Virus record (IMG/VR): IMGVR_UViG_3300001782_000005 | Location: 62,001 to 126,000 of that record | Reading direction: 5' to 3' (one strand) | DNA: 64,000 nt | Part shown: positions 19,080 to 59,317 of the stretch, in pieces | Numbering within the stretch: position 1 is the stretch's first letter | How the letters are laid out: the number at the start of each line of letters is the position of its first letter | Program-made: the position numbers and the translations under genes | Notes under the pieces: generated by a model | The model's database searches: none | The model's input: the letters and a program-made list of their open reading frames with translations, nothing else | Told to the model about the DNA's origin: nothing

Positions 19080-22076
19080 TCACTCCTTCAATACTCCAAT
19101 AACATTAAAATATGCATCAAGCAGTTTCACAGATTCTGAAACATCATCTTCCTCATCTTTCGGTTTAATAAATTCCGATTCAATTGTTTCGTTGATATAT
19201 CTATTCTTTAAATCTATACAATCTGATTTTGTTGTTAAAAATTCAGAAAGGTTAATTGGTCCATCGTGAGCAATTAAACATGCTGTCTCCATTTCCCCAC
19301 ATCTCTGACCACCACGATGCTTCCTTCCTCCTAAAGGTTGCAGAGTTTTCTTTGCATATGATCCAATACCTCTAGCGGCTAATCTTGTCTCAGCAATATG
19401 CACCATCTTAAAGAAATAGATATAACCAGCGGCAACTTTATTTAGAAGCTTCTCTTTTGAGATTGGATCATAGATATCGTATTCAAACGAAGTTCCAGTT
19501 TTCTCCATTGCCTCTTTTACCATTTCCATTGAAACAGATTCAAATGGAGGTTGAATTAGTGATAGCCCTGCAATAAAATCTTTACTAATCACCTTTGGCA
19601 GTTGTTCTTCGAATTGCTTGTAATACCAATTCCCTTCTGTATTATCAATCACTTTTATATAGTGAAGTAAACTTTTCCTAACTTGTTTTTGACTACCCTC
19701 ATCAATCAAGTCAAAAAGTTTCTTCCTTAAATCAATAAAAGACATTGATAGGTGTAACTCAAATAATTGACCAATATTCATCCTAGAGATTATCCCAAGC
19801 GGATTTATACAAATATCAACATTCCTACCATCTGGAAGTTGAGGCATTTTCTCATGTGGAACTATCCTTGAAATAACTCCTTTATTCCCATGCCTATTTG
19901 CAATTTTATCTCCAGCCTCTATTGGTCGATAATAAATTCCGAACATCTCAACTCTTACACCGTTAACTGGTTCCCCCTTAACTTTATACCTACCAATATG
20001 AGAGAATTTGCTCAAATTTCGATCTCGAATAAATTGTTTAGCTTGCTCGACCGAAAGATGTTCATGTAAGACTTTCTGAAAATCTTTTTCCTTCTTTTGT
20101 TGTTTCTCGATCTTTTCTTCAATCCATTTCTTATACTCAGGTATTTCTTTATTCCACACATTTGCATAGACATTTGCATCAGTAATCCAAACTCTCTTTC
20201 TAGTGGTGAGTGGTGTCTCTTCTTCAAAAATTGAATAGAAGTCTAATCCTGCCGTAACTTCTTTCATTTTTGCATAAGGTTTTCCGGGAGCTATCGACTC
20301 CATTACATTAGGTAGTGGTTTATATACATTCTCGGTTAAACTTAGAAGTACTTTATTAGGCGGAATTGTAAACGATAAATCTCTATAATGGACAGATGTA
20401 AATACATCTTCTTTAACTAATCTATCAGATATAACTATTCCGTCCTCATAATTATAACCATAATAGGTCATAACTGCAGTTAATAAGTTTCGACCAAAAT
20501 TTATCTTACCATCTGTACAGAATCCGCTCTCAGCTAATATATCTCCTGCTTTAAATTTATCTCCAACTTTTACATAGATATTCATACCATCCATATTCTC
20601 AACATATATTTTCCTAAGGCCAATATCAAAGACATCAGCTTCATTATCATCATATTTAACAATCAAGAATTCTTGATTCAAAAATACTACTTCACCATCC
20701 TTTTTTGCTCTTCTAACAAATTGAGTAAAATCTGTATATAATCCCTCACATCCAGATTGAATTGTGGGAATATCAAATTCCCTGAGCATTATTGATTGTC
20801 TCATCTGAGATGCAGACATTTGTAATCTAGTCTGATCATTATGCTCGAGAAAAGGAACCATCGAAACTGGAATTGAAATGATTTGTTTATCCAAAATTTC
20901 TTCAGAAAACCGTAAATTATTATCTAATTTTACATTTGGAATCAAATTTTGAATAACTCCACAATTATCCCTGTCTGGAGTATCCACTGGACAAATCCTA
21001 CCAAACATACTTGGACAAATATCTCTCAAATGCTCAGGAACGTTCTCACGATTAAAACCACCTGGCCCAATTAAACTTATTCTTGATAAACGAGTCAATT
21101 CCTCAATCGGATTTATTGCAAAATCAAATTGAACAATATCCGACACATTACACTCTGAGAGGATTTGAGAAGAATTGATATTAAACTTTGGTTGCCTTGC
21201 TGTTCTATTCGACATACATAAATCAAAGACAGCTTTAGAAACTTTTGCTAAAATCATATATTCAGCACATCTAACTCTCTTATTTCTAAAATCAGTATCA
21301 TCATATACTACTCCAGCAATCGCATTGAATAATTCTTCTATTAGGGATCCAGTTGTGAAATATTCAGCAGACATTACATCAGCCTTAAGTATTAGATCAA
21401 GAGCATATACAAGATCCTCACCCTTTGATTTTGCGTTATAGTGTGAATAGTGTGCTCCGACCTCTCTTATAAAATCATCTTGTGTCCAACCAGCTGAATT
21501 TTCATAATAGAGTTTTAAATCCAGCATTAACTTATCATATATAGTATTACCACTTACTTCTAGAGCAGATAGTTTGAATCTTTGATTCAATTCATCCATT
21601 CCATAGTAAGCAAACATTATTAAAGCAAATGGAACTTTCTTCCCAAGAATACTCAACTTTACATGAGGTTGTTCTCTATCGTCAAAGACCATTATTGAGG
21701 CAACATTCGTCCTCAATTTGATTGATTTTCCTCTAGTAACAATAGGAATATCAAAGAGTTGAAATTGTGGAATCTTTTTCCTGCCTTTAATCATTATATA
21801 GTTTCGATCAATAAGTTTTGGTATTGCCATACTCAAGTCTATCTCAGAGTTTCCTTTCTGTAATTTAATAACCATGCTCTGCTTTAAGGTTTTGAATAAC
21901 TCACCTGAAGTAAATTTTGAGTCTTTAATTATAAAATCAGTTACTGTAAATCCCAGTTCTTCGGCAGGTTTTAAGATTTGCCTTACTTTCTCGGTTAATG
22001 AAGAGTATTCTCTCTCTCTGATAGAGAAAATATTACTCTCCTCATTAACCTTAAAATACGGATTGAGTATGTTCAA
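19080..22076 (-). CDS. rpoB: DNA-directed RNA polymerase beta-like subunit (set 1)
   Basis: GRICPVDTPD, PFLEHND..R.QM.ASQMRQ, GYNYEDG, GDKIANRHGNKG, SRMN.GQ, QP..G....GGQRCGEME. Confidence 0.95.
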   Translation of the reverse strand: MNILNPYFKVNEESNIFSIREREYSSLTEKVRQILKPAEELGFTVTDFIIKDSKFTSGELFKTLKQSMVIKLQKGNSEIDLSMAIPKLIDRNYIMIKGRKKIPQFQLFDIPIVTRGKSIKLRTNVASIMVFDDREQPHVKLSILGKKVPFALIMFAYYGMDELNQRFKLSALEVSGNTIYDKLMLDLKLYYENSAGWTQDDFIREVGAHYSHYNAKSKGEDLVYALDLILKADVMSAEYFTTGSLIEELFNAIAGVVYDDTDFRNKRVRCAEYMILAKVSKAVFDLCMSNRTARQPKFNINSSQILSECNVSDIVQFDFAINPIEELTRLSRISLIGPGGFNRENVPEHLRDICPSMFGRICPVDTPDRDNCGVIQNLIPNVKLDNNLRFSEEILDKQIISIPVSMVPFLEHNDQTRLQMSASQMRQSIMLREFDIPTIQSGCEGLYTDFTQFVRRAKKDGEVVFLNQEFLIVKYDDNEADVFDIGLRKIYVENMDGMNIYVKVGDKFKAGDILAESGFCTDGKINFGRNLLTAVMTYYGYNYEDGIVISDRLVKEDVFTSVHYRDLSFTIPPNKVLLSLTENVYKPLPNVMESIAPGKPYAKMKEVTAGLDFYSIFEEETPLTTRKRVWITDANVYANVWNKEIPEYKKWIEEKIEKQQKKEKDFQKVLHEHLSVEQAKQFIRDRNLSKFSHIGRYKVKGEPVNGVRVEMFGIYYRPIEAGDKIANRHGNKGVISRIVPHEKMPQLPDGRNVDICINPLGIISRMNIGQLFELHLSMSFIDLRKKLFDLIDEGSQKQVRKSLLHYIKVIDNTEGNWYYKQFEEQLPKVISKDFIAGLSLIQPPFESVSMEMVKEAMEKTGTSFEYDIYDPISKEKLLNKVAAGYIYFFKMVHIAETRLAARGIGSYAKKTLQPLGGRKHRGGQRCGEMETACLIAHDGPINLSEFLTTKSDCIDLKNRYINETIESEFIKPKDEEDDVSESVKLLDAYFNVIGVLKE

Positions 22077-22320
22077 CTTTTCCTCCAGTCTTTTTTATAA
22101 TCCATGTTACAAACCTTATTACATCTCCGTCTGTAAGATCACTCATATAGTTTCTATCAATTTTTCTTGAAATCCACCCATAAAGATCATGATCTTTTAA
22201 TAAATGAGCATTTAATCTTATGAATCTTAGTAATCTCCTTCTAGTAAATTGTCTAGTTTGACAAGACACATCAAACGAATATAGAAGTCCTTCCACCTTC
22301 ATCACAAGTCTCTCCCACAT
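22051..22320 (-). CDS. small hypothetical protein between beta' and beta
   Basis: Overlaps both flanking genes. Confidence 0.5.
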   Translation of the reverse strand: MWERLVMKVEGLLYSFDVSCQTRQFTRRRLLRFIRLNAHLLKDHDLYGWISRKIDRNYMSDLTDGDVIRFVTWIIKKTGGKVEHTQSVF

Positions 22321-25010
22321 AAAATCTTATCCATAACACCATAATATCTTCCTGGTTGTAAGATTCCTTTTAAGATATGCTGTTTTGGTCTTGAAAATGC
22401 TAAACCTAATAACCAACTTTCATAACTTGGAACTTTCTGCACCGAGTGATACTCAGGAGATAATTTTTCTCTACCTTCTATTAATCTCCACTTCCTAATT
22501 CCTTTCCACATCAACTGGGATACAACACATTCAAAATGAACATGATGAATATTTCTATTTGTGTTATAGACATCAAAGAGATCTGATACAATATCTACAT
22601 AATTCTTATTATCGAATTTATGTAGAAGTTTTGATGCACTCGCAAGATCACCAATGATATCCATCTGCCTTACAGCTTCATCATCTGCTTGTTCACCTTC
22701 TTTTACATGGGCTACTCCAGATGTGTGGAACGTTCTAAGAACCAATTGAGTATTACACTCCCCTAAACTTTGTGCAGCAATGACCCCAATGAATCTGCTA
22801 TTTAAAACTTTATATAATTCTCCATAACATTTCTTACATATTTTTGGACTTGTACAAAAGATTGGACTCCTTATGTGAATAACCTTTCCAACTAAATCTA
22901 AATAATTTTCCTTCGTTATCATCTCCAAAACACCATTATTATCATAATATCTATAAGTCAACATTCTAGCTTTCTTATTATCTTTTACGTAAACTAAAAG
23001 AAGATCATTTGTTCCACAATCTTCATGGTCTCCTATCTGAAGATTTGCACAAGCAAAAATTAGTTTTCTCGAAAGATATCCAGATGCTCCAGTATTAAGT
23101 GCGACATCAAGTAATCCTTTTCTACAACCATATGTAGAATTGAAAAATTCTTCCTCAGTCAGACCTTCTAAAAGACTATGTTTTATTGGAGTTGGAAGAA
23201 TCTGACCCCTAAAATTAGAGATAAACCCTCTAGTTAGAATTATCTGCCTGACTTGATCCCAACTACCTCTTGCTCCAGACTCAACCATATATGAATATTT
23301 AAAACTATCTTTAAGTGATCTTGTAGTCTCATCATTTGAGATCATCTCAATCTGATGTCTTATACTATGATCAGAATAGATTTCGTGCTTTATTTTTGTT
23401 AAATCTCCATTAAATGAGTCAAGAGACATGGTCGCACCAAATAAAGTTGAATACTTGAAACCAATAAATTTTATTCTATCAAGAACTTGCTTAATAATAT
23501 CAACAGGATATTTAGATTTAATATCATTGAGTATCTTCATCAATTTTCTTTTTCTGATTGCTTCGTTGACTAAAGGATAATCAACCGGCAGACACTCATT
23601 AAATATTTTAATTCCCTCACTAATTTTCTCTCCCTTAAATTCAACTTCATTTGATAAATCTAGAAAGCTATCACTTGTTAGAGCATATACTCCAAGAATT
23701 ATGTCTTGACTAGGGGTTGTCGCTAAACTCTCATTCGCAGGATTGCTTAAGTTTCTTGTTATTAGAAATTTCTCTCTAACTTCTTGTTTTGATTGCTCAG
23801 AGATTGGAATATAGACTGCCATCTGGTCACCATCAAAATCAGCATTAAAACCAGGGCAAGCAAGTGGATGAATCTTAATAACATTGTCTAGAGATATCTT
23901 AACATTAAAACCCATCATACTTAATCTGTGTAACGATGGTTGCCTATTTAATAAACAAACCTCATCTTTGGCAATTTCTTCACAAACTCGGTATAGGACT
24001 GGTGACTTCGTTTCTATACAATCATCAACAAAATCAATTGCATCATTTAATAACTTAAATCTACCAATCTCAATGAGTTTCTTTGATATCTGCAGTTTAA
24101 ATAATTCAAGAAACATTAGGTAAGGCAAAACACACTCATCTAAATTCAATACCGGATCAGGAATTATCACTGCCCGACCAGAAAAGTCAATTCTTTTTCC
24201 TAAAATATTTCCCCTAATAAGACCTTCTTTCTTTGCTAATTTAGAGATAATATGTGAATATAACTCATTTACATCTTTCTGAATTTGAGTAAAGTAACTA
24301 TAGAATAGTTTCTTATCTCTATGTATATCAACTATTGTATCTCTCATAATTTCTTTTTTCGTCAATATCTGAATATAATATCTATTTATCTGATCAACCA
24401 CTTGGTTGTTTCTTTCAATATTTTTCGCTGCTGGTCTAAGATCAGGGGGCAACACAAGCACATTATGTATGAACATCTTATCCAAATTATCTCGAATAAC
24501 TTTCCACTCCAGAATTCCATCCTCAACAAACATATGGGAGAGATCCCCTATTAATTTTCCAATTGCCTCTATCTTCTCAAATTTTTCTGCATCTTTCGGA
24601 ACCGCAGATTCACTAGTGGCTACTCCATATTCATCTTCTCGTACAAATAAAATACTTTGTTCATTCTTCATTAAATCATCCAGAAGTCCTTTTACTTTTG
24701 AACCTCCAATATCAACTATTAACTCATAGAAAATCGGATTGACAACTGGAAATGGAAGAACTATTCTAGCAAATCTCCTTCTCCTCTCATCACTATTAAC
24801 AATATCTACCTCACAAATAGCACAAGTTCCACCAGCACCAGAAATTCCATAATACGTGCCACACTGGCATGTATAATTCCTAACTGGTCCAAAGATTTGT
24901 TCAGAGAATAAACCCTTCGGATGGAACTTCTTCTTGCTCATCATTTTCGTTGAACTTACTTGTTTTAGCTCCTCCGAAAACTTATTAATGTCAAGAAGAC
25001 TTGGCATCAT
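22302..25010 (-). CDS. rpoC: DNA-directed RNA polymerase beta'-like subunit (set 1)
   Basis: GLFSEQIFGP + CQCG..CAIC, GKRIDFSGRAVI, NRQPSLH, NADFDGDQM, SGYLSRKL, TQLVLRTFHTSG. Confidence 0.96.
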   Translation of the reverse strand: MMPSLLDINKFSEELKQVSSTKMMSKKKFHPKGLFSEQIFGPVRNYTCQCGTYYGISGAGGTCAICEVDIVNSDERRRRFARIVLPFPVVNPIFYELIVDIGGSKVKGLLDDLMKNEQSILFVREDEYGVATSESAVPKDAEKFEKIEAIGKLIGDLSHMFVEDGILEWKVIRDNLDKMFIHNVLVLPPDLRPAAKNIERNNQVVDQINRYYIQILTKKEIMRDTIVDIHRDKKLFYSYFTQIQKDVNELYSHIISKLAKKEGLIRGNILGKRIDFSGRAVIIPDPVLNLDECVLPYLMFLELFKLQISKKLIEIGRFKLLNDAIDFVDDCIETKSPVLYRVCEEIAKDEVCLLNRQPSLHRLSMMGFNVKISLDNVIKIHPLACPGFNADFDGDQMAVYIPISEQSKQEVREKFLITRNLSNPANESLATTPSQDIILGVYALTSDSFLDLSNEVEFKGEKISEGIKIFNECLPVDYPLVNEAIRKRKLMKILNDIKSKYPVDIIKQVLDRIKFIGFKYSTLFGATMSLDSFNGDLTKIKHEIYSDHSIRHQIEMISNDETTRSLKDSFKYSYMVESGARGSWDQVRQIILTRGFISNFRGQILPTPIKHSLLEGLTEEEFFNSTYGCRKGLLDVALNTGASGYLSRKLIFACANLQIGDHEDCGTNDLLLVYVKDNKKARMLTYRYYDNNGVLEMITKENYLDLVGKVIHIRSPIFCTSPKICKKCYGELYKVLNSRFIGVIAAQSLGECNTQLVLRTFHTSGVAHVKEGEQADDEAVRQMDIIGDLASASKLLHKFDNKNYVDIVSDLFDVYNTNRNIHHVHFECVVSQLMWKGIRKWRLIEGREKLSPEYHSVQKVPSYESWLLGLAFSRPKQHILKGILQPGRYYGVMDKILCGRDL

Positions 25011-25335
25011 ATTCCTCCCAACTAAAATCTAACCATGGTTTGAAATAACAATCGTCGAGATAGAAATTACATATTACCATCTCAATAAATTGCCTAAATT
25101 TTTCGTCGTATTTCTGCCTCTTAATCTTCTCATCTAAGCAAAGTTCTCCAGTATCAGGATTCGCATTTGGATGCTTTGCATTAATGATCACCTTACTGAT
25201 ATAACCATCTACAAGGTAAATTTTATAATTAGTTACAATGTAATCATTATTAATTCTAGAAATTCTAAATGTTTCATCCTTGTAGAAAAATCTTCCCGGA
25301 ACAAGATACGTATTATAATCTAATATCTGTTCCAT
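24991..25335 (-). CDS. minimal UBC/E2-like protein
   Basis: HPNANPDTGELCLD matches the E2 signature HPN(I)...GxICLD including the catalytic Cys. Confidence 0.65.
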   Translation of the reverse strand: MEQILDYNTYLVPGRFFYKDETFRISRINNDYIVTNYKIYLVDGYISKVIINAKHPNANPDTGELCLDEKIKRQKYDEKFRQFIEMVICNFYLDDCYFKPWLDFSWEEYDAKSS

Positions 25336-26204
25336 TACGCACCACCAGTAACAAATAGTAACTGAATATAATTTTCCTCAACTCTAATCACAAAATTTCT
25401 TTCAAACGGATAGAGATTCATTACTGATTTTAAATTATCAACTACAGCCTGAGGGGTATTTAATTGGCCTCTGGGAACAATCTTGCAACCAACATGTCTT
25501 TCCCTCTCACCCAAGCAAACTTTAACATCTCTCTCTTGATTTATTTCCATAATTGGGCGAAAACTTTGCTCTAACTTTAGCAATCTAGAATCATCTATAT
25601 CAGGTTCATAAATTAAATCTGTATCTCTACTTTTGTCCTGAATATCTCTACTAATTGCTTTTGCATGATGATCTAAACTTATTTCATATATTTCTTGGTT
25701 AGCTATCCATTGATTAATGATACTATTACTATCAATCAAGATAGCAAGTTGTAATGCAGCATTTTTAAGATCGTTTTTCTTTAAAGGTAGGTTATATCTG
25801 CCGTCATAATTAAAAGGATAGTTTATATTTTTTCGACAGTCGATAATAAGGTATCGGCCAGAAATAGATGCTCGAATATCTATTATATTGCCTCGGTCAT
25901 AGACATAGTCTCTGCAATCTATAACCAGGTCACAGGTAGGAAGTTCGGTTTCTCCTTCTATAAATTTTTCTCTGGATATTGCCATTATAATATCTTCATT
26001 AAAAGACTTCAAGTGATTATATAAAGCATTTACCTTTAAATCTCCAATGTCTCGTTTTGTATAAATCGAATTTCTAATATTTTTCTCTCGTACAATATCT
26101 GGATCAATTAAAATTAGTTCTTTTATGTTATCAGTACTAGCCAAACTTTCAGCTAGATAACCGCCTAAAGATCCAATTCCAAGGATTGCGATTCTTTGTT
26201 TCAC
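25335..26204 (-). CDS. ThiF/E1-like protein (divergent)
   Basis: ILGIGSLG, LIDPDIV..KN, K, VIDC; lacks the canonical NLxRQ arginine. Confidence 0.8.
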   Translation of the reverse strand: MKQRIAILGIGSLGGYLAESLASTDNIKELILIDPDIVREKNIRNSIYTKRDIGDLKVNALYNHLKSFNEDIIMAISREKFIEGETELPTCDLVIDCRDYVYDRGNIIDIRASISGRYLIIDCRKNINYPFNYDGRYNLPLKKNDLKNAALQLAILIDSNSIINQWIANQEIYEISLDHHAKAISRDIQDKSRDTDLIYEPDIDDSRLLKLEQSFRPIMEINQERDVKVCLGERERHVGCKIVPRGQLNTPQAVVDNLKSVMNLYPFERNFVIRVEENYIQLLFVTGGA

Positions 26205-26242
26205 GCTCGATCCTTTATTGTTTGTTCTTCATTTAGAGAATA

Positions 26243-26273
26243 GTGACCGAGATCAATAAATGACCTCGGTCAC
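26243..26273. terminator. intergenic hairpin
   Basis: GTGACCGAG...CTCGGTCAC inverted repeat. Confidence 0.5.
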
Positions 26274-26276
26274 CAG

Positions 26277-26750: not shown

Positions 26751-26751
26751 A

Positions 26752-26787: not shown

Positions 26788-26801
26788 AATTAAACAACTT
26801 T

Positions 26802-32874: not shown

Positions 32875-33354
32875 TCAGGTACCTCCAAAACCATATTTGA
32901 CCATAAGCTGCTCTAGTTCTATAAGGAAATTTGCAGTATCTTGAGTATACTCTTCAAGTACTATCTTTCCCTTAGCCCTAACATTGGGACTTTCAGCCTT
33001 CATATAGAAGGGGAGGACTAACTCACCTTTCTCAACTGGTGCTACTGCCTGACCTCTTACTGGAGAACCCAACGGAACAGTTTGTGGTTCAATGGTCTTA
33101 TTTTTGAAGTTAACATAGAGAAACTTATTCTCCCGATTTTTTGTAACATGACGACCTTTTCTTAGGAACCTGATCACATTATGAATAGTCTTTCTGCTCT
33201 TTTCACTTATTCCGGTATCAATAACCGCCTGCATCAAGTCGTCCTCTTCAAAACCATACTCTGTACCGTATTTAGCACATAGATTATCTTTGATCAGAAG
33301 ACCACGATCTTGATACCTCATTCTTCTTGCCGGTTCCTTTACCACTCTAAGCAT
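32875..33354 (-). CDS. hypothetical protein
   Basis: ORF coupled to neighbours. Confidence 0.55.
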   Translation of the reverse strand: MLRVVKEPARRMRYQDRGLLIKDNLCAKYGTEYGFEEDDLMQAVIDTGISEKSRKTIHNVIRFLRKGRHVTKNRENKFLYVNFKNKTIEPQTVPLGSPVRGQAVAPVEKGELVLPFYMKAESPNVRAKGKIVLEEYTQDTANFLIELEQLMVKYGFGGT

Positions 33355-34381
33355 CCCTCCTTTCTTTATGGACTAAGTTATCAAAGAGATTTGGATTCTT
33401 CGATAACAACTTGGACATAATCATACACGTCCAATTACATTTCCGGCAATATTTTTCTTTATCTGATTTAATCATTTTCTTCAGTGCAAAATAGAGTCGA
33501 CCGTCTTCATTTATACAATTGATAGCTTTGATTTTTGGAGTCATCATTCCTCTAATCCTAAGACAAAGTCTGACAGACCCGTCTGCATCAATTGTCAAGT
33601 TGTGTACATCCTTCTCAATTTCACAATCTAATTCTGCCGGAAGTATTTTGATTATCTCAGGGAGGAGGACCGAGGCCATATGAACATCTAATTTATTGTC
33701 AATGATTCGGTTAAAAGCATCCAGAAGCACGCTGTCTTTCTGCACTAGCAGAGTCTCATCCGTAATATGAGCAAAGTCATAGTACGGAGACTTCGCGATG
33801 TCAATCACTGTGATGTCGCTGCTTATTCCCAATTTAGACAATTCGTCAACTAATTGGTAGAGATAACTAACCGTTTTACTATCGACAGTTATCTCTGCAA
33901 CGATATCTTTTATACATTCTCGATACTTTTTCAATCGTTCAAGACCTTTGATGCTCTTTTTGACTCGGTCTGTTCCCTCCTCCTCTGAGAAAATGATTGG
34001 ATCAATTGAAGAAGTTAAACCAGTGATATAATCTGTTTTAGATATTAGATTTTCTAACATTGGTTGAACTTCATCACTATTGTTGGTTATGATGGTGTAG
34101 TTAATATCATTGTCATTACAATAATTTACAATCTCTGGTAGATCTTTTCTTAGTAGTGGCTCACCTCCATAAAATAGGTGGAAACAGTCTGGGTTATGTA
34201 TATGAAGTCTTCTAAGACACTCAATAACAAAACCCGTTGACATCTCATTCTTGAAATAATGCCCCAAGGATGGGTAGTGATTCTTAGGTCTATCTTTATA
34301 ATTTCTTGCGATTCTACAATAACCACAAGATAGGTTACATCTTCTTGTCAAGAGCCAACTTACAATTTGAATTTTATCCAT
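33347..34381 (-). CDS. radical SAM enzyme with C-terminal Cys cluster (Twitch/SPASM-like)
   Basis: CNLSCGYC, GGEPLLR, ITN; DGSVRLC...CRKCNWTC. Confidence 0.9.
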   Translation of the reverse strand: MDKIQIVSWLLTRRCNLSCGYCRIARNYKDRPKNHYPSLGHYFKNEMSTGFVIECLRRLHIHNPDCFHLFYGGEPLLRKDLPEIVNYCNDNDINYTIITNNSDEVQPMLENLISKTDYITGLTSSIDPIIFSEEEGTDRVKKSIKGLERLKKYRECIKDIVAEITVDSKTVSYLYQLVDELSKLGISSDITVIDIAKSPYYDFAHITDETLLVQKDSVLLDAFNRIIDNKLDVHMASVLLPEIIKILPAELDCEIEKDVHNLTIDADGSVRLCLRIRGMMTPKIKAINCINEDGRLYFALKKMIKSDKEKYCRKCNWTCMIMSKLLSKNPNLFDNLVHKERRDA

Positions 34382-50982: not shown

Positions 50983-50996
50983 ATTAATATATATAG
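50983..50996 (-). promoter_or_regulatory. candidate phage promoter CTATATATATTAAT
   Basis: Exact 14-mer repeated at 63136..63149; both copies intergenic. Confidence 0.45.
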
Positions 50997-51018: not shown

Positions 51019-51282
51019 TTAACTAAGGTCAAGAGACGTTGGTTTGTTATAATTTTCAAGGTTAAACTTCAATGTACCTTTCTGAAAACTATCAGAAGCA
51101 TTTTTCATCATGTCTTTTGTATGAATAGGCATATCAGAATCAGTTACATGGAGGAGAAGTCCACCCTTAAATGAAAATACGACTCCATCTGGAGTATGAT
51201 CAACTCCAATTAAGTCTTGTCTATCACATTCAATTTTGACAGAACCTTTCGAGACATTAATTTTATCAATTTTGCTCATCAA
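51019..51282 (-). CDS. hypothetical protein
   Basis: ATGA overlap with upstream gene. Confidence 0.6.
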   Translation of the reverse strand: MMSKIDKINVSKGSVKIECDRQDLIGVDHTPDGVVFSFKGGLLLHVTDSDMPIHTKDMMKNASDSFQKGTLKFNLENYNKPTSLDLS

Positions 51283-51875
51283 AATTCTCCTTCGATCATT
51301 CTCAATGAAATCAATGACTTGTTCTTCTCACTGGCCCTAATGAACCATTCAATCAGTTTGTCTTTTATATATGTTCTAAGAAATATAGCAAATAACTGCT
51401 CAGAGTCATAAGTTTCAATCTGATTTGTAATTGCTTCCACCAGTTGATTTCCGTTATCATAACAATATTGTTCAATATTAACCCCTCTAGGATCTACTTT
51501 TAAATATTTCCAAACATCTCCAATAAACTCAACATGATTAAACTCTAGAAACTTTATTAGGTTATAAACCTCGTCAAAATGATATTGATTTTCTAACTCA
51601 ACTCTCTCCGGAAATTCAAAATCATATATCTCTAGTACCTTCTTAAGAATATGTTGACAAAGTACTTGCTGAGCTTCAAAAGGCCTTAATCTAATATCTG
51701 TTATAAAATTTTGGTATATCTCTTTAAACTCGTCCTTACCAATTGCATGAAGAAATTCTAGGAGATCGTATTTAAGAATATTATCAGCAGTATACTCATA
51801 TTGCGTTATATCCGAATCAACCTCAGGTGAAGGATCAACATATGCAGTTAGAACCTTAAGATTAGCATCAGGCAT
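51279..51875 (-). CDS. hypothetical protein downstream of RNAP beta (set 2)
   Basis: 198-aa ORF starting 2 nt after the beta stop. Confidence 0.65.
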   Translation of the reverse strand: MPDANLKVLTAYVDPSPEVDSDITQYEYTADNILKYDLLEFLHAIGKDEFKEIYQNFITDIRLRPFEAQQVLCQHILKKVLEIYDFEFPERVELENQYHFDEVYNLIKFLEFNHVEFIGDVWKYLKVDPRGVNIEQYCYDNGNQLVEAITNQIETYDSEQLFAIFLRTYIKDKLIEWFIRASEKNKSLISLRMIEGEF

Positions 51876-51877
51876 AT

Positions 51878-54800
51878 TTATCTCCCTGAAAGCATCATTG
51901 CTGTAAAGTAGCTGTCTAACACTTCTCCAGCTGGATTAATTTTCGGTTCCTTATATCCAGCACTTCCAGTTTGGACAATCTCAGATATAATTTCATTTTT
52001 TGTAACATGATCATCACTTAGAGGACCCATCATCTCAGCAAGAAGAGAAGGACAATTATAAGAAATGAGAGAATATGTTTCTGCCTCTCCCATTCTCTGT
52101 CCACCCCCTCTTCTTTTTCCAGCAGTTGGTTGAAGAGTCTTGGGTTTCACTGGCCCAGTACTTCTACTATGAATTTTCAAATCTCCAATATGCTCAAGTT
52201 TATAGATATACATATAACCAACTGGAACATCTGATCTAGTCCTAGTATTATATTCTGGTATAAATAGTTTATATCCAGGTTTTAGATTTAACATCTTAAG
52301 AACGGCTTGAATTGCTTGATGACTTGGTGCCTTAAACGGTGGAATTACAATAGGCACTGCCTTCTTCTGATTTATCTGATTCAACATTTGTTTATATCTA
52401 GTTGGTGATAATTTTAAAATACCGTTGGCTAAAGAATTAGAATATTCATTATTCTTCGATGTATCTAATCTATTCATAACTCTTTTAACTAGAGCTGCTA
52501 CCTGATCTTGCTTCTTTATCTCAAGGAATCTCCTAGCTAATTCTCTAGATACTAAACCACAATATAACTCATATAATTGACCTAAATTCATTCTTCCAAG
52601 TATTCCAAGAGGATTTAAGATAACTTCAACTCTCTCACCCCAAGGAGTTCTTGGCATCTCATTAGCTGGTTCAACTAAAGATACAATTCCTTTATTGCCA
52701 AACCTATTACATAGTTTATCCCCAAGACCTATCCTCAATTCCTGCTCAATCTTAAACCTTACTAAAATTCCCTTAATTGTCTCGCCCCTTACAGAAAACT
52801 TTTCTTTTGGGGCTACTCCATATTTTCTCCTTGTCCTTGAGATCAAATTCTTCAATTGCGGAAATTTTGTCTCACCAATATTTGAGAATACCTCAATTTC
52901 AACAACTCTACCACCAGGACTTTTAAGAGTATAAATTCCTCCAGCTATAGCCTCACCCTCATCTTCTTCATACCCAAGCAATTCTTCAATTTCTCCAATA
53001 GTTCTCCTAAGTAGAGGTTCTCCTTTCTTTGTATCTTGACCGATCCCGACTATACTAATCAAACGATCATCTTTTGAAACTAGAGTGTCTTCAGTTAAAC
53101 CATGCAGAGAAGTTAACTTATCGCCTGATATTAAACTATCACTTATGACTATTCCGTCCTCAAAGTTATAACCTTTATAAGGCATCATTGCGGTTAGAAG
53201 ACTTCTGCCCAAGCACATTGTTCCGCCAGAAAGAGCACTACCTTCAGCAACAATTTGATTCTTTTTAACAGTCTGACCAATTTTCACAGTAGGCTTAAAT
53301 ACACTAAGAGTATCCTTACTCGTCCCAGACCTGAGATGAGCAGGACTAAGATCAATTGATTGTGCTCTGCCCGCACTACAATCAATCATCATCCTATCCG
53401 ACGTAATAGATTTAACTTTCCCTGCACACGGAGACCTTTTCACATAAACGTCTGATAGAACATTAGGTAAGACGGATTCATAACCAGACTGAACATCGGG
53501 TGGTTCGGGGTTCTTTAATGGCAATGCCTGTCTAGATTGATTAGCTGCCATCATAACCCTAACTCCATCATTATTCTCAATGAATGGAATCATAGCTGTA
53601 GAAACTGATAACATACCGGAGTACTCAGTATTAGTAGCAGGTTTTGTTTGAAATAAACCTCTAGCTGAAGTAATAAGAGCATTTACTGTTAGATGTTGTG
53701 TAATACCAATACTATCACTCTCCGGAGTATCTAACGGATCAATATTGCCGAAATATGATCTATGTACATTAAGAGCGGCTCCCTGCATTGCTCGTTTGTC
53801 CGGAATACCCCCAATATTTCTTCCTATTGGAGTGGTCCTTGTCATAACCGCCATCTCTTCAATTGGATTAACATACTCCATATCAACAACAATTTGAGAG
53901 TTTATAAAATCGCTCAATAGTTTACCTGGGACAATTCTAAGAGTAGCTTTAGTGTTTCCAGCAAGAACTTGTTCCTTATACTCAGTATATGCAGCTAATA
54001 CCTGTTTTAAAGCGAAATGTGCAAGAACTTCTGATGCTCTTATCCTCTGTTGTGATAAATCATTTCTATCTTCTACATAACCCTCTATAACCTTTGTGGC
54101 CATATATTTCATAATCATATAGAGATCTGTAGGTAATTGCTTATTCATAAGTACTTGTTTTGCAATCGGATCAACAATATTCTCAACATTAGACATGATA
54201 TGAAATGTAGAAGCAATGCGACCAGTCATCGCAATAATTAAACTATTCCAATATTGTTTGTCGGGAAACGGGGCTTCTATATTATATAAATAAGGTTTAG
54301 CTTGAATCAGAGATTGACAAAGTTCTTCTTTGAGTTCATTATTAGTACCATCAAAAAATACAGCTTGAGTTTCATTAACCCTTACACCAAATTCAGTTTT
54401 CTTAATTACCTTTGTTTCCTCAATCCTATACTTTATACCATATAATTTTAAAGTCTGCTCAAAACCAAATGCAAAGGATAAAACTGCAAGGAATGGAAGC
54501 CGATAGGTCATAAATATTTCCAAATAATTTTTCTTTCTACCCCGTTTACTATAAATACGAAATATCGAATAAATACTTTCAAACTTAGATTCGTATGGTT
54601 TTGGAAATGTAATCGGATTCTGAATCATTTGATTGATTAAACATTTTCTCCTGCCGTGAATACTAAAAGTTCCTGAGACAGGGTCAATCTTGGGCATCTC
54701 CATCTCGATAGTATGTATATTTCCATACTTATCTTCCAATACTACTATCATAATACTAACATCTGATTTATCTAATTCTCCCTTCCTGGTTGGTTTGTCA

Positions 54801-55972
54801 ACTATCTTTATAGATTTAATTTTTATAGGTATTTCTTTCTTCTCAAGAGTTCTAAAGACGTTCGTCATATCTTTTCTTAAATTTGTCGAGAAATCTACCT
54901 GTCTCTTCTCAAAAAGATGTTCTGGAGATTTTTTATCAACCATTTTTGGAACATTAGCTGTTTGAACAACAATATCATCAGTTGTACTAACAGTTGGTTT
55001 TGGTTTCAAAACTTCGTCAATAAATGCTTTATCAATAGCTTTCAGAGCTATAATTCTCTTTTCTCTTGGAATAGCTTTTGCAATCTTTTTGGATCTTTCA
55101 ATATCTCCACTAGTATTATAAAGAATCGAAGCAGTAGCAACTTCTTCAACTTCATCTGGTTTAATTTCTTTACTAACAACTTTTTCAGCAGTCTGTTTAT
55201 CTTTATTAAAGAAAGCAGCAATAGAGTCTTTTACTTTAGCTTGGTTCTTAGCAGGTATATGTTTAGCAACTTTAGTCATAACTTCTTCGGTTGCTGCCTT
55301 TATATTCTCTTCCTCTTCTTTTTCCAGATCAATTGATTTGATATTTCTAATATATGTAAGCATCCTTTGAAGATTGAAATCTCTATTTCTAACTAAGAGT
55401 CTATATTTTGTGCTTGATTCATCAATGGTTCCATATAGGAGATGATCAAAAGTTGCACCTTCAGATTTCATCATCTGAAGGATTGGAAAAATCTTCCTAT
55501 TACGAAGCGAATTAAACTCCTTTGTAGCATCCACAGTATATAAGAGAATTTTTAAATAATCTGGAGAAAAACTATTAAGAGTTTTAAATAAAACATTCTT
55601 TAAAAGAAAACCAGCTCTCTGTCTATAATTAATTGGTTTATAAACAGTATCAATCGCAACTAAATATTGTGATAAATCATAAAAAAGATTTCTATTCTGT
55701 GGAAACTTCATATTTGTTGAATATGCCATTAAACCTAATGTCTTATATGCTTTTCTAACTTCTCCAACTAATCTCGTTCTAGGAATCTTAGTAACCGGAA
55801 CAAGGACATATCGAACATCAACTCGCCTTATTCCCAATTTTGGATAATCATCTAAAAAATTTGAATTCTCACTAAAATATATAAGTAGAGTTTTCTTCTT
55901 ATCCATAGGAAATCGAAGGCCAGTAGCAACTTGACTATATAACTTAAGTTTATCAACTCTAAAAATAGCCAT
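51878..55972 (-). CDS. rpoB: DNA-directed RNA polymerase beta-like subunit (set 2) with ~350-aa N-terminal extension
   Basis: GNIDPLDTPE, PFIENND..R.MM.ANQSRQ, GYNFEDG, GDKLCNRFGNKG, GRMNLGQ, GGQRMGEAE. Confidence 0.95.
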   Translation of the reverse strand: MAIFRVDKLKLYSQVATGLRFPMDKKKTLLIYFSENSNFLDDYPKLGIRRVDVRYVLVPVTKIPRTRLVGEVRKAYKTLGLMAYSTNMKFPQNRNLFYDLSQYLVAIDTVYKPINYRQRAGFLLKNVLFKTLNSFSPDYLKILLYTVDATKEFNSLRNRKIFPILQMMKSEGATFDHLLYGTIDESSTKYRLLVRNRDFNLQRMLTYIRNIKSIDLEKEEEENIKAATEEVMTKVAKHIPAKNQAKVKDSIAAFFNKDKQTAEKVVSKEIKPDEVEEVATASILYNTSGDIERSKKIAKAIPREKRIIALKAIDKAFIDEVLKPKPTVSTTDDIVVQTANVPKMVDKKSPEHLFEKRQVDFSTNLRKDMTNVFRTLEKKEIPIKIKSIKIVDKPTRKGELDKSDVSIMIVVLEDKYGNIHTIEMEMPKIDPVSGTFSIHGRRKCLINQMIQNPITFPKPYESKFESIYSIFRIYSKRGRKKNYLEIFMTYRLPFLAVLSFAFGFEQTLKLYGIKYRIEETKVIKKTEFGVRVNETQAVFFDGTNNELKEELCQSLIQAKPYLYNIEAPFPDKQYWNSLIIAMTGRIASTFHIMSNVENIVDPIAKQVLMNKQLPTDLYMIMKYMATKVIEGYVEDRNDLSQQRIRASEVLAHFALKQVLAAYTEYKEQVLAGNTKATLRIVPGKLLSDFINSQIVVDMEYVNPIEEMAVMTRTTPIGRNIGGIPDKRAMQGAALNVHRSYFGNIDPLDTPESDSIGITQHLTVNALITSARGLFQTKPATNTEYSGMLSVSTAMIPFIENNDGVRVMMAANQSRQALPLKNPEPPDVQSGYESVLPNVLSDVYVKRSPCAGKVKSITSDRMMIDCSAGRAQSIDLSPAHLRSGTSKDTLSVFKPTVKIGQTVKKNQIVAEGSALSGGTMCLGRSLLTAMMPYKGYNFEDGIVISDSLISGDKLTSLHGLTEDTLVSKDDRLISIVGIGQDTKKGEPLLRRTIGEIEELLGYEEDEGEAIAGGIYTLKSPGGRVVEIEVFSNIGETKFPQLKNLISRTRRKYGVAPKEKFSVRGETIKGILVRFKIEQELRIGLGDKLCNRFGNKGIVSLVEPANEMPRTPWGERVEVILNPLGILGRMNLGQLYELYCGLVSRELARRFLEIKKQDQVAALVKRVMNRLDTSKNNEYSNSLANGILKLSPTRYKQMLNQINQKKAVPIVIPPFKAPSHQAIQAVLKMLNLKPGYKLFIPEYNTRTRSDVPVGYMYIYKLEHIGDLKIHSRSTGPVKPKTLQPTAGKRRGGGQRMGEAETYSLISYNCPSLLAEMMGPLSDDHVTKNEIISEIVQTGSAGYKEPKINPAGEVLDSYFTAMMLSGR

Positions 55973-56325
55973 TATTTCTCCACTCTTATTGAATCTTCCT
56001 CATTATGTGTAGTAGCTACCTCAACAAACTGACAATCAGTAACTCCTTTAAATCTATGTTTTTGACCCGGAAAAACTCTATGAGATTGACTAGCGCCCAA
56101 GACAAAAGTTTCACCTTCGACATCCAATAAAAGTGCTCCATTTAGAATATAAAATGTTTCATCTTTTATTGGATGGTAATGATAACGACCCTTTGAGGAC
56201 CACTTTCCCTTTTTTATTGTTATGAGTTTTCCACAATATTTATCATTGTTCTCAAACCATAACTCGCTTCCCCATGTCTTCTCGACTAACTTATGTTCGC
56301 GCTTCATGCTACCTTCCTTTGACAA
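55972..56325 (-). CDS. cupin-fold protein
   Basis: KTWGSE...HYHPIKDETFYI...HRF...EV. Confidence 0.85.
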   Translation of the reverse strand: MSKEGSMKREHKLVEKTWGSELWFENNDKYCGKLITIKKGKWSSKGRYHYHPIKDETFYILNGALLLDVEGETFVLGASQSHRVFPGQKHRFKGVTDCQFVEVATTHNEEDSIRVEK

Positions 56326-59317
56326 GTGTTCCTGTTACGACTTTTTCAAGAATACTAGGTTCAAATTTCCGGTCAGCTGTTAAACCCGTCCATACAGCTT
56401 TTCTTATATCTTCAAAAGCTACAGAATGGACAAATCCTGTAGTAAAGACGATCTCCTTAAAATTTATCATTATTGGATCCCAAGTTTTCCCTAATCGAGC
56501 AGGAATACTAGTATCAGATCTGTCTCTTAATACATTTGATATAAGTACCTCAAGGTGAACAATATCCATACCAGACATTTCTTTATAAACAGCAAATAAT
56601 TTTCTAAATAGATGACTAACGTCTTTATAAACTTCTCTCCCTGCCAATAATCTTGTAACATAATTAACTTGTTTCTCAATATCTACAGCCTCAAGAGTTA
56701 CTTCAAGAATATAAGTATTTGCAGAAAAATATAGTTTAAGAGCTTCCCGACCAACCTTCTCCATATTTCTTGCTTGAATCTCAACTGGATAATCTAGAGC
56801 AATGCTAAATTGAATATCCTCATAATCTATCTGGCATAAAAGACTCTTGACCCAAATCTTCCCATTGTCAATTCTTATATCGTTATTCATATCATAAATT
56901 GACAAATCAATAGTTATAACACAATCTTTCTTTGTAACCAGAAAACTTTCTTGTTGCTCTAGGTATTTCTTCGCAGCAATTTCTGTAAGCATTGGTTCAT
57001 TATCAGAAATATCTTTTATCATATCTTTTTTACGAATCTCAACTGCTCCACCAGTATGAAAAGTCCTCATTATTAACTGAGTTCCACGTTCTCCAATCAC
57101 TTGCGAGGCAATCATTCCTATATACGGACTTTTATGCCTTTCAACTAGGCGACCATAACAAGTATGACAAACTTTAGGAGTTAAACAATAAATGGGAGTT
57201 CGGAGATTAACTATATCTCCACTCTTATAGTCAGCAGTATTAAACGGTTCTACTCGACCTTTCTCAATGATATATCTTCCAAACATACGACCCATTAAAT
57301 CTTTATCAAGTTTTAGATCCACAGTTCGATCAGTTCTGCAATCCCTTACTGTCCTATTAAGTTCAACAGAATCTAAAACATATGCCAACTGTCTAGAAAA
57401 ATAACCTGTCTCAGCAGTATTGTGCACTCGATCTATAATACCTCTTCTAGATCCATAGGTCTGATTAAAAAATTCAGTATTCTTTAAACCATCTGAAAAC
57501 GAACCTTTAATAGGATCTAATATCTTTCCCGTAGGATCTGATACAATGCCCTTTGCAACAAGTATCTGCATTGGGCCTCCCCAACCCTTTGCAGAACCAG
57601 ATTCAACTAAATCATATATACCTTTATCTTGCAAATGTTTCTTTAAAATTTTCTCCATCTTTCGGAGAATAGTATCTGCTTCCTCAGTGGAGGCCTTATC
57701 TAAATCTTTCTTTAGCTGATATATTTCATCCGGGAGTTCAATCTGGTCTAGCGAAATAGTTGGAGACATTATTGTTGCAAATTTAAACCCAACTTTTTCT
57801 AATCTAGAAACACTTTCCCTAACTAAATCATCATCATATTTCGCAAACAATTTATCTACTGTATCTTTAACAACTTTCTTCGTTACTATTTCATTAATAA
57901 ATTCAAAGTCTTGAGGAAAACAACTATTAAAAATAGCCCTACCCATTGTAGTTCTGCGTCTTCTATATATAACTGGAATATAAGGATCAGTAGCCTTTTG
58001 TAAATCTTCATCACTAACTGAAATAGGTGAAGCGGTCCTTTTTACATCTTTAGTAATAGTATATAAACCCACATACATTTCTTTACTAAGTTCAAAAGTT
58101 ACTGCTCGTGAAGATTCTCCAGACTGAGCTCTCATCATTTTCTCTATAGCCTCAGCCTGAGATTCATTTGTGAGAGGGTGATATATAGCCATCGTATCAC
58201 CATCAAAATCAGCATTAAATCCACCCACTTGCATAGTGCATACTTGGATTGTATCGCCATGTACTAATTTTGGTTTAAAAGCTCTAATGGACTCTGGATG
58301 CAATACAGGATCTCGTTTTGCAAGAACTGCTCTACCAGTTATAACAACTTCTGTTGCATCAGTAAATAAGTCATATAAACTTTTGGGAATCTTATCTCCA
58401 TCTCTGATTGATTTCAGAACTCTCTGAATACTATCAACAGACAAGTCTAAGTCTGTAGCTTCCTTAACTTCTCTCTCAAGAGTTGCACGATCAACCTTCC
58501 CAGAATATAATAAGTGATGGATAATAAAAGGTTCAAAAAGACTAACTGCCATTCTAAATGGAAGACCAATTTCATTGACTTTTAAATCAGGTCCTGGTGT
58601 AATTACTGCACGCCCTGAAAAATCAACTCTTTTGCCTGCTAACTGTTCACGAATAATACCATTCTTTTTTGCTATCTTTGCTCTAACAAATTTATCATGG
58701 TCAATAACTGCAGATTGTAAGCCCCAATTTAATAAATCAAAAAGAGGGCCAGTTTTAGCTGAACTCTGAACCTGAAATGAACGACGCATAATTGCAAGAT
58801 AAATATCATTCATCTCATCAATTATCCAATTGCCTGCATCATCTTGAAAAGCAGATCTAAAATCTGGAGGAATAATAGGTAGTTTATCAATGAAGAGAGT
58901 TTTCTTATTATATGCGTCTTGAAGAACTTTGATAAATTTTTGTCTTTGGCTAGTATCAATACGAAATTTAATGTCTGGAAATAAATCAATAAATGCTTTT
59001 ATTCCGGTCACACCTCCAGACTCAATTTTCAACCGACCGCTGCCATCCAATACAAATTGTTCTTCTGCTGACAGGAATTTTTCGGCTTTCTTATCTAATT
59101 GAACTAAAATTGTATATGCAGAAGGGTGGACAATTTTTGTATAGAGATTTATATACGAGTATTTTGTCCTTCTATCTCTAGATCCAACAGGGCCAAAGAT
59201 CTGCTCAGAGAATAGTCCCTCTGGATGAAATTCTCCTGTTCTCAGCAAATAGTCAGTTGAAGTAACTGGAGTCAAACCTTTGACGAATTTATCAACGTCA
59301 AGGAGTCTAATCATCAC
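56309..59317 (-). CDS. rpoC: DNA-directed RNA polymerase beta'-like subunit (set 2)
   Basis: GLFSEQIFGP, GKRVDFSGRAVI, KRDPVLH, NADFDGDTM, TGYFSRQL, TQLIMRTFHTGG. Confidence 0.96.
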   Translation of the reverse strand: MMIRLLDVDKFVKGLTPVTSTDYLLRTGEFHPEGLFSEQIFGPVGSRDRRTKYSYINLYTKIVHPSAYTILVQLDKKAEKFLSAEEQFVLDGSGRLKIESGGVTGIKAFIDLFPDIKFRIDTSQRQKFIKVLQDAYNKKTLFIDKLPIIPPDFRSAFQDDAGNWIIDEMNDIYLAIMRRSFQVQSSAKTGPLFDLLNWGLQSAVIDHDKFVRAKIAKKNGIIREQLAGKRVDFSGRAVITPGPDLKVNEIGLPFRMAVSLFEPFIIHHLLYSGKVDRATLEREVKEATDLDLSVDSIQRVLKSIRDGDKIPKSLYDLFTDATEVVITGRAVLAKRDPVLHPESIRAFKPKLVHGDTIQVCTMQVGGFNADFDGDTMAIYHPLTNESQAEAIEKMMRAQSGESSRAVTFELSKEMYVGLYTITKDVKRTASPISVSDEDLQKATDPYIPVIYRRRRTTMGRAIFNSCFPQDFEFINEIVTKKVVKDTVDKLFAKYDDDLVRESVSRLEKVGFKFATIMSPTISLDQIELPDEIYQLKKDLDKASTEEADTILRKMEKILKKHLQDKGIYDLVESGSAKGWGGPMQILVAKGIVSDPTGKILDPIKGSFSDGLKNTEFFNQTYGSRRGIIDRVHNTAETGYFSRQLAYVLDSVELNRTVRDCRTDRTVDLKLDKDLMGRMFGRYIIEKGRVEPFNTADYKSGDIVNLRTPIYCLTPKVCHTCYGRLVERHKSPYIGMIASQVIGERGTQLIMRTFHTGGAVEIRKKDMIKDISDNEPMLTEIAAKKYLEQQESFLVTKKDCVITIDLSIYDMNNDIRIDNGKIWVKSLLCQIDYEDIQFSIALDYPVEIQARNMEKVGREALKLYFSANTYILEVTLEAVDIEKQVNYVTRLLAGREVYKDVSHLFRKLFAVYKEMSGMDIVHLEVLISNVLRDRSDTSIPARLGKTWDPIMINFKEIVFTTGFVHSVAFEDIRKAVWTGLTADRKFEPSILEKVVTGTLVKGR

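Follow-up and report, generated by a model that had tools for sequence, protein, structure and literature searches.

An uncultivated marine jumbo phage carrying two unsplit bacterial-type RNA polymerases that resemble the virion and non-virion enzymes of phiKZ/AR9-type phages

Jumbo phages of the phiKZ/AR9 type encode two paralogous beta/beta'-type RNA polymerases in one genome, a virion enzyme (vRNAP) and a non-virion enzyme (nvRNAP), without alpha or sigma homologues and with each enzyme divided into 4 to 5 polypeptides (Sokolova et al. 2020, PMC7598289; Lavysh et al. 2017, PMC5312081). Unsplit, deep-branching phage RNAPs have also been described, notably the mReC clade (Weinheimer and Aylward 2020, PMC7481178), for which one beta/beta' pair is reported per contig, and full-length or nearly full-length bacterial-type beta' subunits occur in the isolates Rhizobium RHph_TM30, Vibrio 1.031.O and Yersinia YerA41, the last of which also has such a beta, with beta' upstream of it. 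Fusobacterium phage JD-Fnp1 (ON464759, 180 kb) combines both conditions, as it encodes an unsplit 930-aa vRNAP-type beta' (matching both phrog_2986 and phrog_2962, although annotated as an alpha subunit) and a 1484-aa vRNAP-type beta, while its nvRNAP-type beta' and beta are split (490 + 649 aa, and a 635-aa beta C piece) and its third vRNAP beta piece is separate.

In contrast, the marine phage examined here carries two complete RNAP sets in which each subunit is a single gene. The analysed window (64,000 nucleotides, positions 62,001 to 126,000 of IMG/VR record IMGVR_UViG_3300001782_000005) forms part of a 277-kb genome and holds two beta'/beta pairs, both on the minus strand, confirming the observation of an earlier note made from the sequence alone. 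Set 1 consists of beta'1 (22302-25010, 902 aa) and beta1 (19080-22076, 998 aa), and set 2 of beta'2 (56309-59317, 1002 aa) and beta2 (51878-55972, 1364 aa). Pfam domains were recovered in all four proteins: Rpb1_1 to Rpb1_5 in beta'1 (Rpb1_2 at 6e-35), Rpb2_6 (E 1.3e-56), Rpb2_3 and Rpb2_7 in beta1, Rpb1_2 (1.3e-30) and Rpb1_5 (2.3e-21) in beta'2, and Rpb2_6 (7.1e-46) in beta2. The catalytic motif NADFDGD sits at residue 389 of beta'1 and 368 of beta'2, while GDK..NR.GNKG is invariant in five-member alignments of both beta families. Beta' lies upstream of beta in both sets, the reverse of rpoB-rpoC in the Salmonella and Acinetobacter loci, and both beta' are shorter than the solved bacterial subunits (1161-1604 aa). 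However, the pairs are not strictly adjacent, with an 89-aa ORF (22051-22320) lying between beta'1 and beta1 and a cupin gene (55972-56325; Cupin_2 at 3.2e-10) between beta'2 and beta2, and beta2 is as long as a cellular beta.

A phmmer search of the four proteins against all genome ORFs found only these two sets, in a genome with direct terminal repeats that CheckV rates as 100% complete. Profile searches for Sigma70_r2, Sigma70_r4 and the alpha N-terminal domain (PF04542, PF04545 and PF01000) found nothing in the whole genome at E<=1, with positive controls detected in 11 to 14 of 14 genomes. The gp68 family (phrog_3209), which represents the nvRNAP promoter subunit, likewise gave no match at E<=1, although the control genomes could not give a signal and a very distant homologue is not excluded. 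Chimallin was not detected with phrog_4795, a family that recognises phiKZ gp54, but the controls were again uninformative and this protein diverges fast. Other features differ from the phiKZ/AR9 type, including a T4-like virion module (sheath, baseplate wedge, portal and capsid) and an unsplit B-family DNA polymerase.

The presence of two sets is not an artefact of assembly. GC content and strand bias are uniform across the window, the 277-kb contig has a terminal overlap, and a 77.8-kb Logan contig joins set 2 to the start of beta'1 with no differences. No near-identical DNA was found in the phage collection. Both sets lie on the same contig in the related sequences G001, G002, scaffold_54 and Ga0450804, and of 24 IMG/VR contigs of at least 80 kb with a set-2 beta', 23 also carry a set-1 beta', always on the same strand and 32-44 kb away. 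The recurrence of this arrangement in independent assemblies from many samples refutes a chimera.

Recent capture of a cellular rpoBC copy is also very unlikely. Both sets are bacterial-type, with bacterial beta' and beta as their best solved-structure matches (224-332 bits for beta', set 1 being the more bacterial-like at 332 bits), yet identity to the bacterial rpoC copies in the phage collection is only 25.6-29.4%, beta' is 300-500 aa shorter than bacterial beta', and the gene order is reversed. Both sets fall outside the bacterial clade with 100/100 support, though only three bacteria and no archaea or eukaryotes were sampled, and both are conserved at 51-67% identity across a deep phage clade. 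The two sets are 26-28% identical to each other and under 30% identical to anything in the phage collection. The description of the system as duplicated in the earlier note should therefore not be read as a recent or lineage-specific duplication; the evidence leans towards a split older than the divergence from phiKZ-like phages, although the trees do not settle this. A few proteins of relatives are labelled as Thorarchaeota or Heimdallarchaeaceae MAG proteins, but this is regarded as binning error, as the RNAPs are bacterial-type, the Shine-Dalgarno sequence AAGGAGG is enriched before genes, and one relative carries a peptidoglycan amidase beside PAAR.

Set 2 specifically resembles the vRNAP. 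As Pfam PF00623 recovered at best one paralog per phage, phiKZ-like beta'N genes were collected using PHROG families. Beta'2 scored 160.9 bits on phrog_2986, the vRNAP beta'N family (phiKZ gp180, RAY gp163 and AR9 gp144), against 89.4 on phrog_2987, while true cross-paralog scores are 41-67 bits. Pairwise phmmer scores were higher for vRNAP than nvRNAP in 9/9 phages, and beta'N trees grouped set 2 with vRNAP at 97/96 and 97/97. The C-terminal 220 aa of beta'2 (match at residues 782-982) match phiR1-37 g148, annotated as a phage structural protein, at E 7e-13, whereas beta'1 gives no hit. Interestingly, beta'2 is split at residue 781-783 in several relatives, which coincides with the start of the match to the stand-alone g148. 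Similarly, phrog_3233, the separate third vRNAP beta piece, matches only beta2 (residues 1156-1361), and hhalign to vRNAP beta runs from column 365 (score 318). The extra N-terminus of beta2 (about 340 aa compared with beta1) is of unknown origin, and no homology between residues 1-364 and the vRNAP beta N-terminal region was detected by hhalign. The beta'-then-beta order is shared with RAY 163/164, SPN3US 240/241 and RSF1 041/040, and in relatives set 2 lies next to PAAR, baseplate-hub and amidase genes.

Set 1 resembles the nvRNAP, although this rests on scores only. Beta'1 scored 121.5 bits on phrog_2987 and 128 on phrog_3015, the nvRNAP families, against 74.7 on phrog_2986, pairwise scores were higher for nvRNAP than vRNAP in 7/7 phages, and the AR9 nvRNAP beta-N subunit gp104 is hit only by beta1. 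In contrast, set 1 + nvRNAP was never recovered as a supported clade. The concatenated beta'+beta tree (1823 columns) grouped vRNAP with nvRNAP (89/97) and, weakly, set 1 with set 2 (62/27); RHph_TM30 and Vibrio 1.031.O lack beta in this alignment, as a search with beta1 found none. The beta'C partition did the same, weakly (vRNAP + nvRNAP at 86/72), and the beta partition was star-like. The three unsplit isolates branched outside the group formed by set 1, set 2, vRNAP and nvRNAP (95-100 support). It is therefore possible that set 1 and set 2 arose by a duplication inside this clade, independently of a separate duplication in the phiKZ/AR9 lineage, with the likeness of set 2 to vRNAP reflecting convergence or ancestral characters that set 1 lost; a division of labour could still exist, but which set is packaged could not be inferred from phiKZ. 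AU tests rejected neither arrangement (p 0.25 for set 1 + set 2 on beta'N; on the concatenated data, set 2 + vRNAP costs only 3.8 lnL units, p 0.41). Independent duplication nevertheless appears the less likely reading, as the vRNAP and nvRNAP branches are the two longest in the tree and come from the same genomes, so that attraction between them is expected, and as the reciprocal best-match patterns hold across phages and three vRNAP-specific pieces (beta'N, the g148-like beta' C-end and the phrog_3233 beta C-end) match set 2 only, or best.

Both sets are accompanied by conserved small ORFs. A 167-aa ORF directly upstream of beta'2 (59314-59817) and a 198-aa all-helical ORF directly downstream of beta2 (51279-51875) are candidate accessory factors, and these, together with an 87-aa ORF that ends the set-2 module (51019-51282) and a 114-aa ORF directly upstream of beta'1 (24991-25335), were present in all four relatives examined. 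In contrast, the 89-aa ORF of set 1 was found only in the two closer relatives, and the cupin position is a variable slot, occupied in relatives by a 368-aa gene or nothing. Pfam found nothing for the 89-, 114-, 198-, 87- and 167-aa ORFs. AF2 models of the 198-aa and 167-aa proteins (pLDDT 69 and 71) had no PDB match better than E 0.5, and Atlas feature hits were below 0.8, including only a weak sigma-like lead (0.73) for the 198-aa protein. Sigma- or omega-like folds were thus not found in these two models.

Two promoter-like motif classes, for which function as promoters is not shown, resemble the early and late promoters of AR9. The first, the AT-rich CTATATATATTAAT, occurs with at most 1 mismatch at 16 sites in the genome against 0.45 in shuffles, all of them intergenic and with a first downstream gene of 63-151 aa, is conserved in relatives, and resembles the AR9 early promoter AAATATATATTAT-(6N)-G (PMC5312081). 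One such site (63136-63149) precedes a 125-aa gene, and another (50983-50996) lies immediately after the set-2 module, where it starts the gene array that holds the replication genes and, about 25 kb further on, set 1; the latter position is conserved in four relatives. The second class, RGAACAAAWWWA, has 19 intergenic sites located 25-45 nt before gene starts, and its RGAACAAA sites, which contain the AACA core of AR9 late promoters, precede the 2781-, 1564- and 992-aa genes and the genes just upstream of the tail sheath. A late-like motif of this class, AGAACAAATTAA (62127-62138), preceded by a terminator-like hairpin with a T run (62175-62187), lies upstream of three genes (342, 242 and 155 aa; 59747-62097) with weak Pfam hits to a PrimPol-like domain and a response-regulator receiver, which are inferred to share an operon with set 2 from their common strand and short gaps. 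However, a late-like motif, AGAACAAACAAT (26217-26228), also lies upstream of a ThiF-like gene, the 114-aa ORF and beta'1, and in two relatives an early-like motif lies 2.5 kb upstream of beta'2, so the timing is not clean. The late-like motif is also poorly conserved in distant relatives.

Taken together, the evidence moderately favours a model in which the window carries the transcription machinery of a host-RNAP-independent jumbo myophage, consisting of two ancient paralogous bacterial-type RNAP cores. Under this model, set 2 would be the undivided counterpart of the vRNAP, made late, packaged, injected with the DNA and initiating early transcription at the AT-rich sites, while set 1 would be the counterpart of the nvRNAP, made after infection and transcribing structural and other late genes from RGAACAAA-type sites. 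The early/late division of labour proposed in the earlier note is thus plausible, but packaging, timing and which enzyme reads which motif are inferred in the absence of RNA data or a virion proteome. Alternatively, both enzymes could be non-virion and divide the work differently, for example between middle and late genes or two template states, with early transcription performed by the host RNAP. The late-like motif before both sets and the T4-like replication and structural genes are compatible with this, but it is considered unlikely, as sigma-70-like promoters are not enriched (56 found against 52.7 expected), no sigma or host-takeover factor was recognised, and set 2 specifically resembles proteins known to be in virions.

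The arrangement appears to be undescribed. No mention of two sets was found in the mReC study, and the IMG sample numbers of this phage and its two nearest relatives are absent from its supplements. More tentatively, this uncultivated clade may preserve the ancestral, undivided state of both phiKZ-type polymerases. In that case, the virion/non-virion duplication happened once, before the subunits were fragmented and before chimallin and gp68 appeared, in a T4-like myophage ancestor that had taken a bacterial-type RNAP, and fragmentation in phiKZ and AR9 came later through invasion by mobile elements. Intermediate stages would still be visible in this clade (beta'2 split at residue about 782, and intein-bearing copies) and in JD-Fnp1, whose branches are, however, long, and these slowly evolving sequences would allow jumbo-phage RNAPs to be placed reliably relative to Bacteria for the first time.

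A 2026 review still states that it is unknown whether vRNAP and nvRNAP arose by duplication in an ancestral jumbo phage or by two separate acquisitions (PMC13282480), and jumbo-phage RNAPs have been left out of RNAP trees because they evolve too fast (PMC7598289). A widespread clade that carries two such enzymes as full-length, slowly evolving genes gives the intermediate sequences needed to test that question, and shows what look like split sites in the making. It also offers minimal two-gene RNAP cores that may assemble without alpha, omega or sigma and would be simpler to express than the 4- and 5-piece phiKZ enzymes.

All genes of the window lie on the minus strand, and the four large ORFs correspond to the two beta'/beta pairs proposed in the earlier note. 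In set 1, beta'1 occupies 22302-25010 (902 aa) and beta1 19080-22076 (998 aa), while in set 2, beta'2 occupies 56309-59317 (1002 aa) and beta2 51878-55972 (1364 aa). All four carry strong Pfam Rpb1/Rpb2 domains, NADFDGD is found at residues 389 (beta'1) and 368 (beta'2), and the GDK..NR.GNKG motif is invariant. The two sets are only 28% (beta') and 26% (beta) identical to each other. An 89-aa ORF separates beta'1 from beta1, and a cupin gene (55972-56325) separates beta'2 from beta2. Interestingly, this second slot is variable, holding a 117-aa cupin here, a 368-aa gene in the relative scaffold_54 (locus L132, 13021-14127) and nothing in the relative Ga0450804 (locus L134, 13000-13097).

Both sets reside on a single 277,131-bp contig with 36.7% GC, of which the window spans positions 62001-126000. 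The first bases of the contig recur at its end, and the record is classed as having direct terminal repeats and as 100% complete. A phmmer search of the four proteins against all ORFs of the genome identified only these two sets. The phage is a myovirus, encoding a tail sheath, baseplate wedge, portal, major head protein and large terminase, along with an unsplit B-family DNA polymerase, ribonucleotide reductase, a DnaB-like helicase, topoisomerase II and SbcCD. In contrast, no Sigma70 region 2 or 4 and no alpha N-terminal domain is encoded (searches with positive controls), and no match to chimallin (phrog_4795) or to phiKZ gp68 (phrog_3209) was found, although the latter two searches lacked a control that gave a signal.

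The collection of deposited phage genomes contained nothing closer than 30% protein identity, but metagenomes hold hundreds of clusters at 54-67% identity for each beta', often on the same long contigs. Both sets are present on one contig in the IMG/VR relatives G001 (about 87% identity) and G002 (51-59%), in an ENA scaffold of 156,749 bp and in a JGI contig of 248,136 bp. Of 24 IMG/VR contigs of at least 80 kb that carry a set-2 beta', 23 also carry a set-1 beta' at 53-64% identity, on the same strand and 32-44 kb away, and in the one exception the expected position lies at the contig end. The DNA itself occurs in marine-sediment and seawater metagenomes of several studies, and a 77.8-kb Logan contig covers set 2 and, by its coordinates, reaches into beta'1 without a single difference, although those three runs may be one data set. 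The pairing is thus neither the product of a chimeric assembly nor rare. Some RNAP subunits of relatives are labelled by NCBI as hypothetical proteins of Thorarchaeota or Heimdallarchaeaceae MAGs, most likely reflecting phage contigs binned into Asgard genomes from the same sediments.

To relate the two sets to known phage RNAPs, PHROG families were first tied to experimentally named subunits. The vRNAP beta'N family is phrog_2986 (phiKZ gp180, RAY gp163 'vRNAP beta' subunit 1' and AR9 gp144 'virion RNAP'), the nvRNAP beta'N family is phrog_2987 (phiKZ gp55 and AR9 gp269) and the nvRNAP beta'C family is phrog_3015 (phiKZ gp74), while phrog_2962 corresponds to vRNAP beta'C, phrog_3148 to vRNAP beta, phrog_3295 to the nvRNAP beta C part and phrog_3233 to a stand-alone third vRNAP beta piece. 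The beta'2 protein scored 160.9 bits on phrog_2986 and 89.4 on phrog_2987, whereas beta'1 scored 74.7 and 121.5, respectively; true cross-paralog scores on phrog_2986 are 41-67 bits. Similarly, in pairwise phmmer comparisons beta'2 preferred the virion copy in 9 of 9 phages and beta'1 the non-virion copy in 7 of 7. The AR9 non-virion beta-N subunit was hit only by beta1, the N-part of AR9 virion beta was hit only by beta2, and only beta2 matched phrog_3233. In phiKZ-like phages the vRNAP beta'N gene sits directly upstream of vRNAP beta, next to the tail-lysin or fibre gene, and in relatives of the phage described here set 2 follows PAAR, baseplate-hub and amidase genes.

The last 220 residues of beta'2 match a separate 232-aa protein of Yersinia phage phiR1-37, g148 (locus L253, 392-1090), which is annotated as a phage structural protein (E 7e-13, starting at residue 782), while beta'1 does not match it. 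This otherwise unnamed protein is therefore probably the C-terminal-most piece of the phiR1-37 virion RNAP beta'. Interestingly, in G002 (locus L136, 4529-7875) and five other relatives, beta'2 is itself divided at that same point into ORFs of 781-783 and about 220 aa, separated by about 270-340 nt. In addition, one 1389-aa copy carries an intein domain (PF14890), and several matched stretches are 0.7-1.1 kb longer than the gene. These arrangements look like snapshots of mobile-element invasion and gene splitting.

Phylogenetic support for the pairing differed between partitions. A beta'N tree (40 rows, 385 columns, LG+C20 PMSF) joined set 2 with vRNAP at 97/96, and a second alignment gave 97/97, with set 1, nvRNAP and that pair forming an unresolved trichotomy. 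In contrast, the beta'C partition weakly joined vRNAP with nvRNAP (86/72), the beta partition was star-like, and the concatenation (32 rows, 1823 columns) joined vRNAP with nvRNAP at 89/97 and set 1 with set 2 at 62/27. AU tests rejected none of these arrangements: on beta'N, set 1 + set 2 gave p 0.25, set 1 + nvRNAP p 0.40 and vRNAP + nvRNAP p 0.25, and on the concatenation set 2 + vRNAP gave p 0.41 at a cost of 3.8 lnL units. However, the vRNAP and nvRNAP branches are the longest in the data set and come from the same genomes, and attraction between them is therefore a real possibility. Orthology of set 2 with vRNAP is treated here as likely, and orthology of set 1 with nvRNAP as plausible.

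All four groups fell outside the three bacteria sampled (100/100) and outside Rhizobium phage RHph_TM30, Vibrio phage 1.031.O and YerA41 (95-100), while in the PDB both sets are closest to bacterial subunits. A whole-record search with beta1 found no beta subunit in RHph_TM30 or 1.031.O (loci L041 and L043), although each has a full-length beta', so that either their beta is very divergent or the search missed it. Alignment with hhalign showed that beta2 has about 340 more N-terminal residues than beta1 and that its alignment with vRNAP beta reaches further N-terminal, but the extension itself is not detectably similar to the vRNAP extension.

Besides the Shine-Dalgarno sequence, two promoter-like motif classes were enriched upstream of genes, whereas sigma-70-type promoters were not enriched. 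The first, early-like class (CTATATATATTAAT with at most one mismatch) occurs 16 times against 0.45 in dinucleotide shuffles, is always intergenic, lies on the minus strand at 15 of 16 sites, and is followed by a first downstream gene of 63-151 aa (median 89). It resembles the AR9 virion-RNAP promoter AAATATATATTAT-(6N)-G and is conserved in relatives, notably right after the set-2 module, and in the window it lies at 50983-50996 and again at 63136-63149. The second, late-like class (RGAACAAAWWWA) occurs at 19 intergenic sites, 25-45 nt before start codons, and precedes the 2781-, 1564- and 992-aa genes, the genes upstream of the tail sheath, and the DNA polymerase, with a median first gene of 303 aa. 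It shares the AACA core of the AR9 non-virion promoter AACA-(6N)-TA/G (PMC5312081). In three divergent intergenic regions outside the window (genome positions 177314/177336, 195363/195405 and 199633/199668; loci L017 and L018), early-like motifs on the minus strand and late-like motifs on the plus strand stand back to back, and AR9 has the same arrangement of an early promoter opposite a late one.

The set-2 operon is preceded by a hairpin terminator (62175-62187) and then a late-like site (62127-62138), which fits late expression of a virion enzyme. However, the picture is not clean, as a late-like site (26217-26228) also precedes the ThiF-like gene, the 114-aa ORF and beta'1, and in two relatives an early-like site lies 2.5 kb upstream of beta'2. 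Within the presumed set-2 operon there are also a weak response-regulator receiver-like ORF (E 5e-5) and a weak LigD PrimPol-like ORF (E 3.5e-5), both below the Pfam cut-off (ORFs at 59747-60214 and 60380-61108).

Four small ORFs are conserved next to the polymerase genes in all four relatives examined, encoding 167 aa before beta'2, 198 aa and 87 aa after beta2, and 114 aa before beta'1. None has a Pfam match, and AF2 models of the 198-aa protein (predicted to be all-helical) and the 167-aa protein are of moderate confidence and match no solved fold. They remain no more than candidates for assembly or specificity factors. The ThiF-like (E1-like) gene lies just upstream of set 1 (25335-26204); relatives have two ThiF-like genes (loci L133, 6400-9315, and L135, 5470-9353), and one also has a faint Prok-JAB hit, resembling a ubiquitin-like conjugation or deconjugation module conserved next to the polymerase. 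Radical-SAM and WYL_2 genes upstream of set 1 and a GTP cyclohydrolase I gene downstream (window 33347-34381; L133 619-1967 and 17181-18062; L135 1116-2519 and 16122-16985) are likewise conserved in relatives. These may form a modified-base (deazaguanine-type) pathway, which would be relevant because AR9-type RNAPs read modified templates.

Reviews of 2020, 2021 and 2026 describe the two jumbo-phage RNAPs only as split enzymes and state that the origin of the pair is unknown (PMC7598289, PMC7824862, PMC13282480). The 2020 paper on unsplit phage RNAPs does not mention two sets per genome in the text that could be searched, and no paper describing the present arrangement was found, although absence from the literature searched is not proof. 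One cultured phage, Fusobacterium phage JD-Fnp1 (ON464759), has an unsplit 930-aa virion-type beta' (locus L063, 2905-5697), annotated in the record as 'RNA polymerase subunit alpha', but a split non-virion set, making it a cultured intermediate worth studying.

The two polymerase sets are real and conserved and have a clear closest relative, and they appear to represent an unsplit variant of the phiKZ/AR9-type two-polymerase system in a T4-like jumbo myophage lineage from marine sediments. The best-supported reading of how they function, of moderate confidence and resting on homology and motif analogy rather than on expression or proteome data, is that set 2 would be injected and read the AT-rich early sites, while set 1 would be made afterwards and read the AACA-type late sites.
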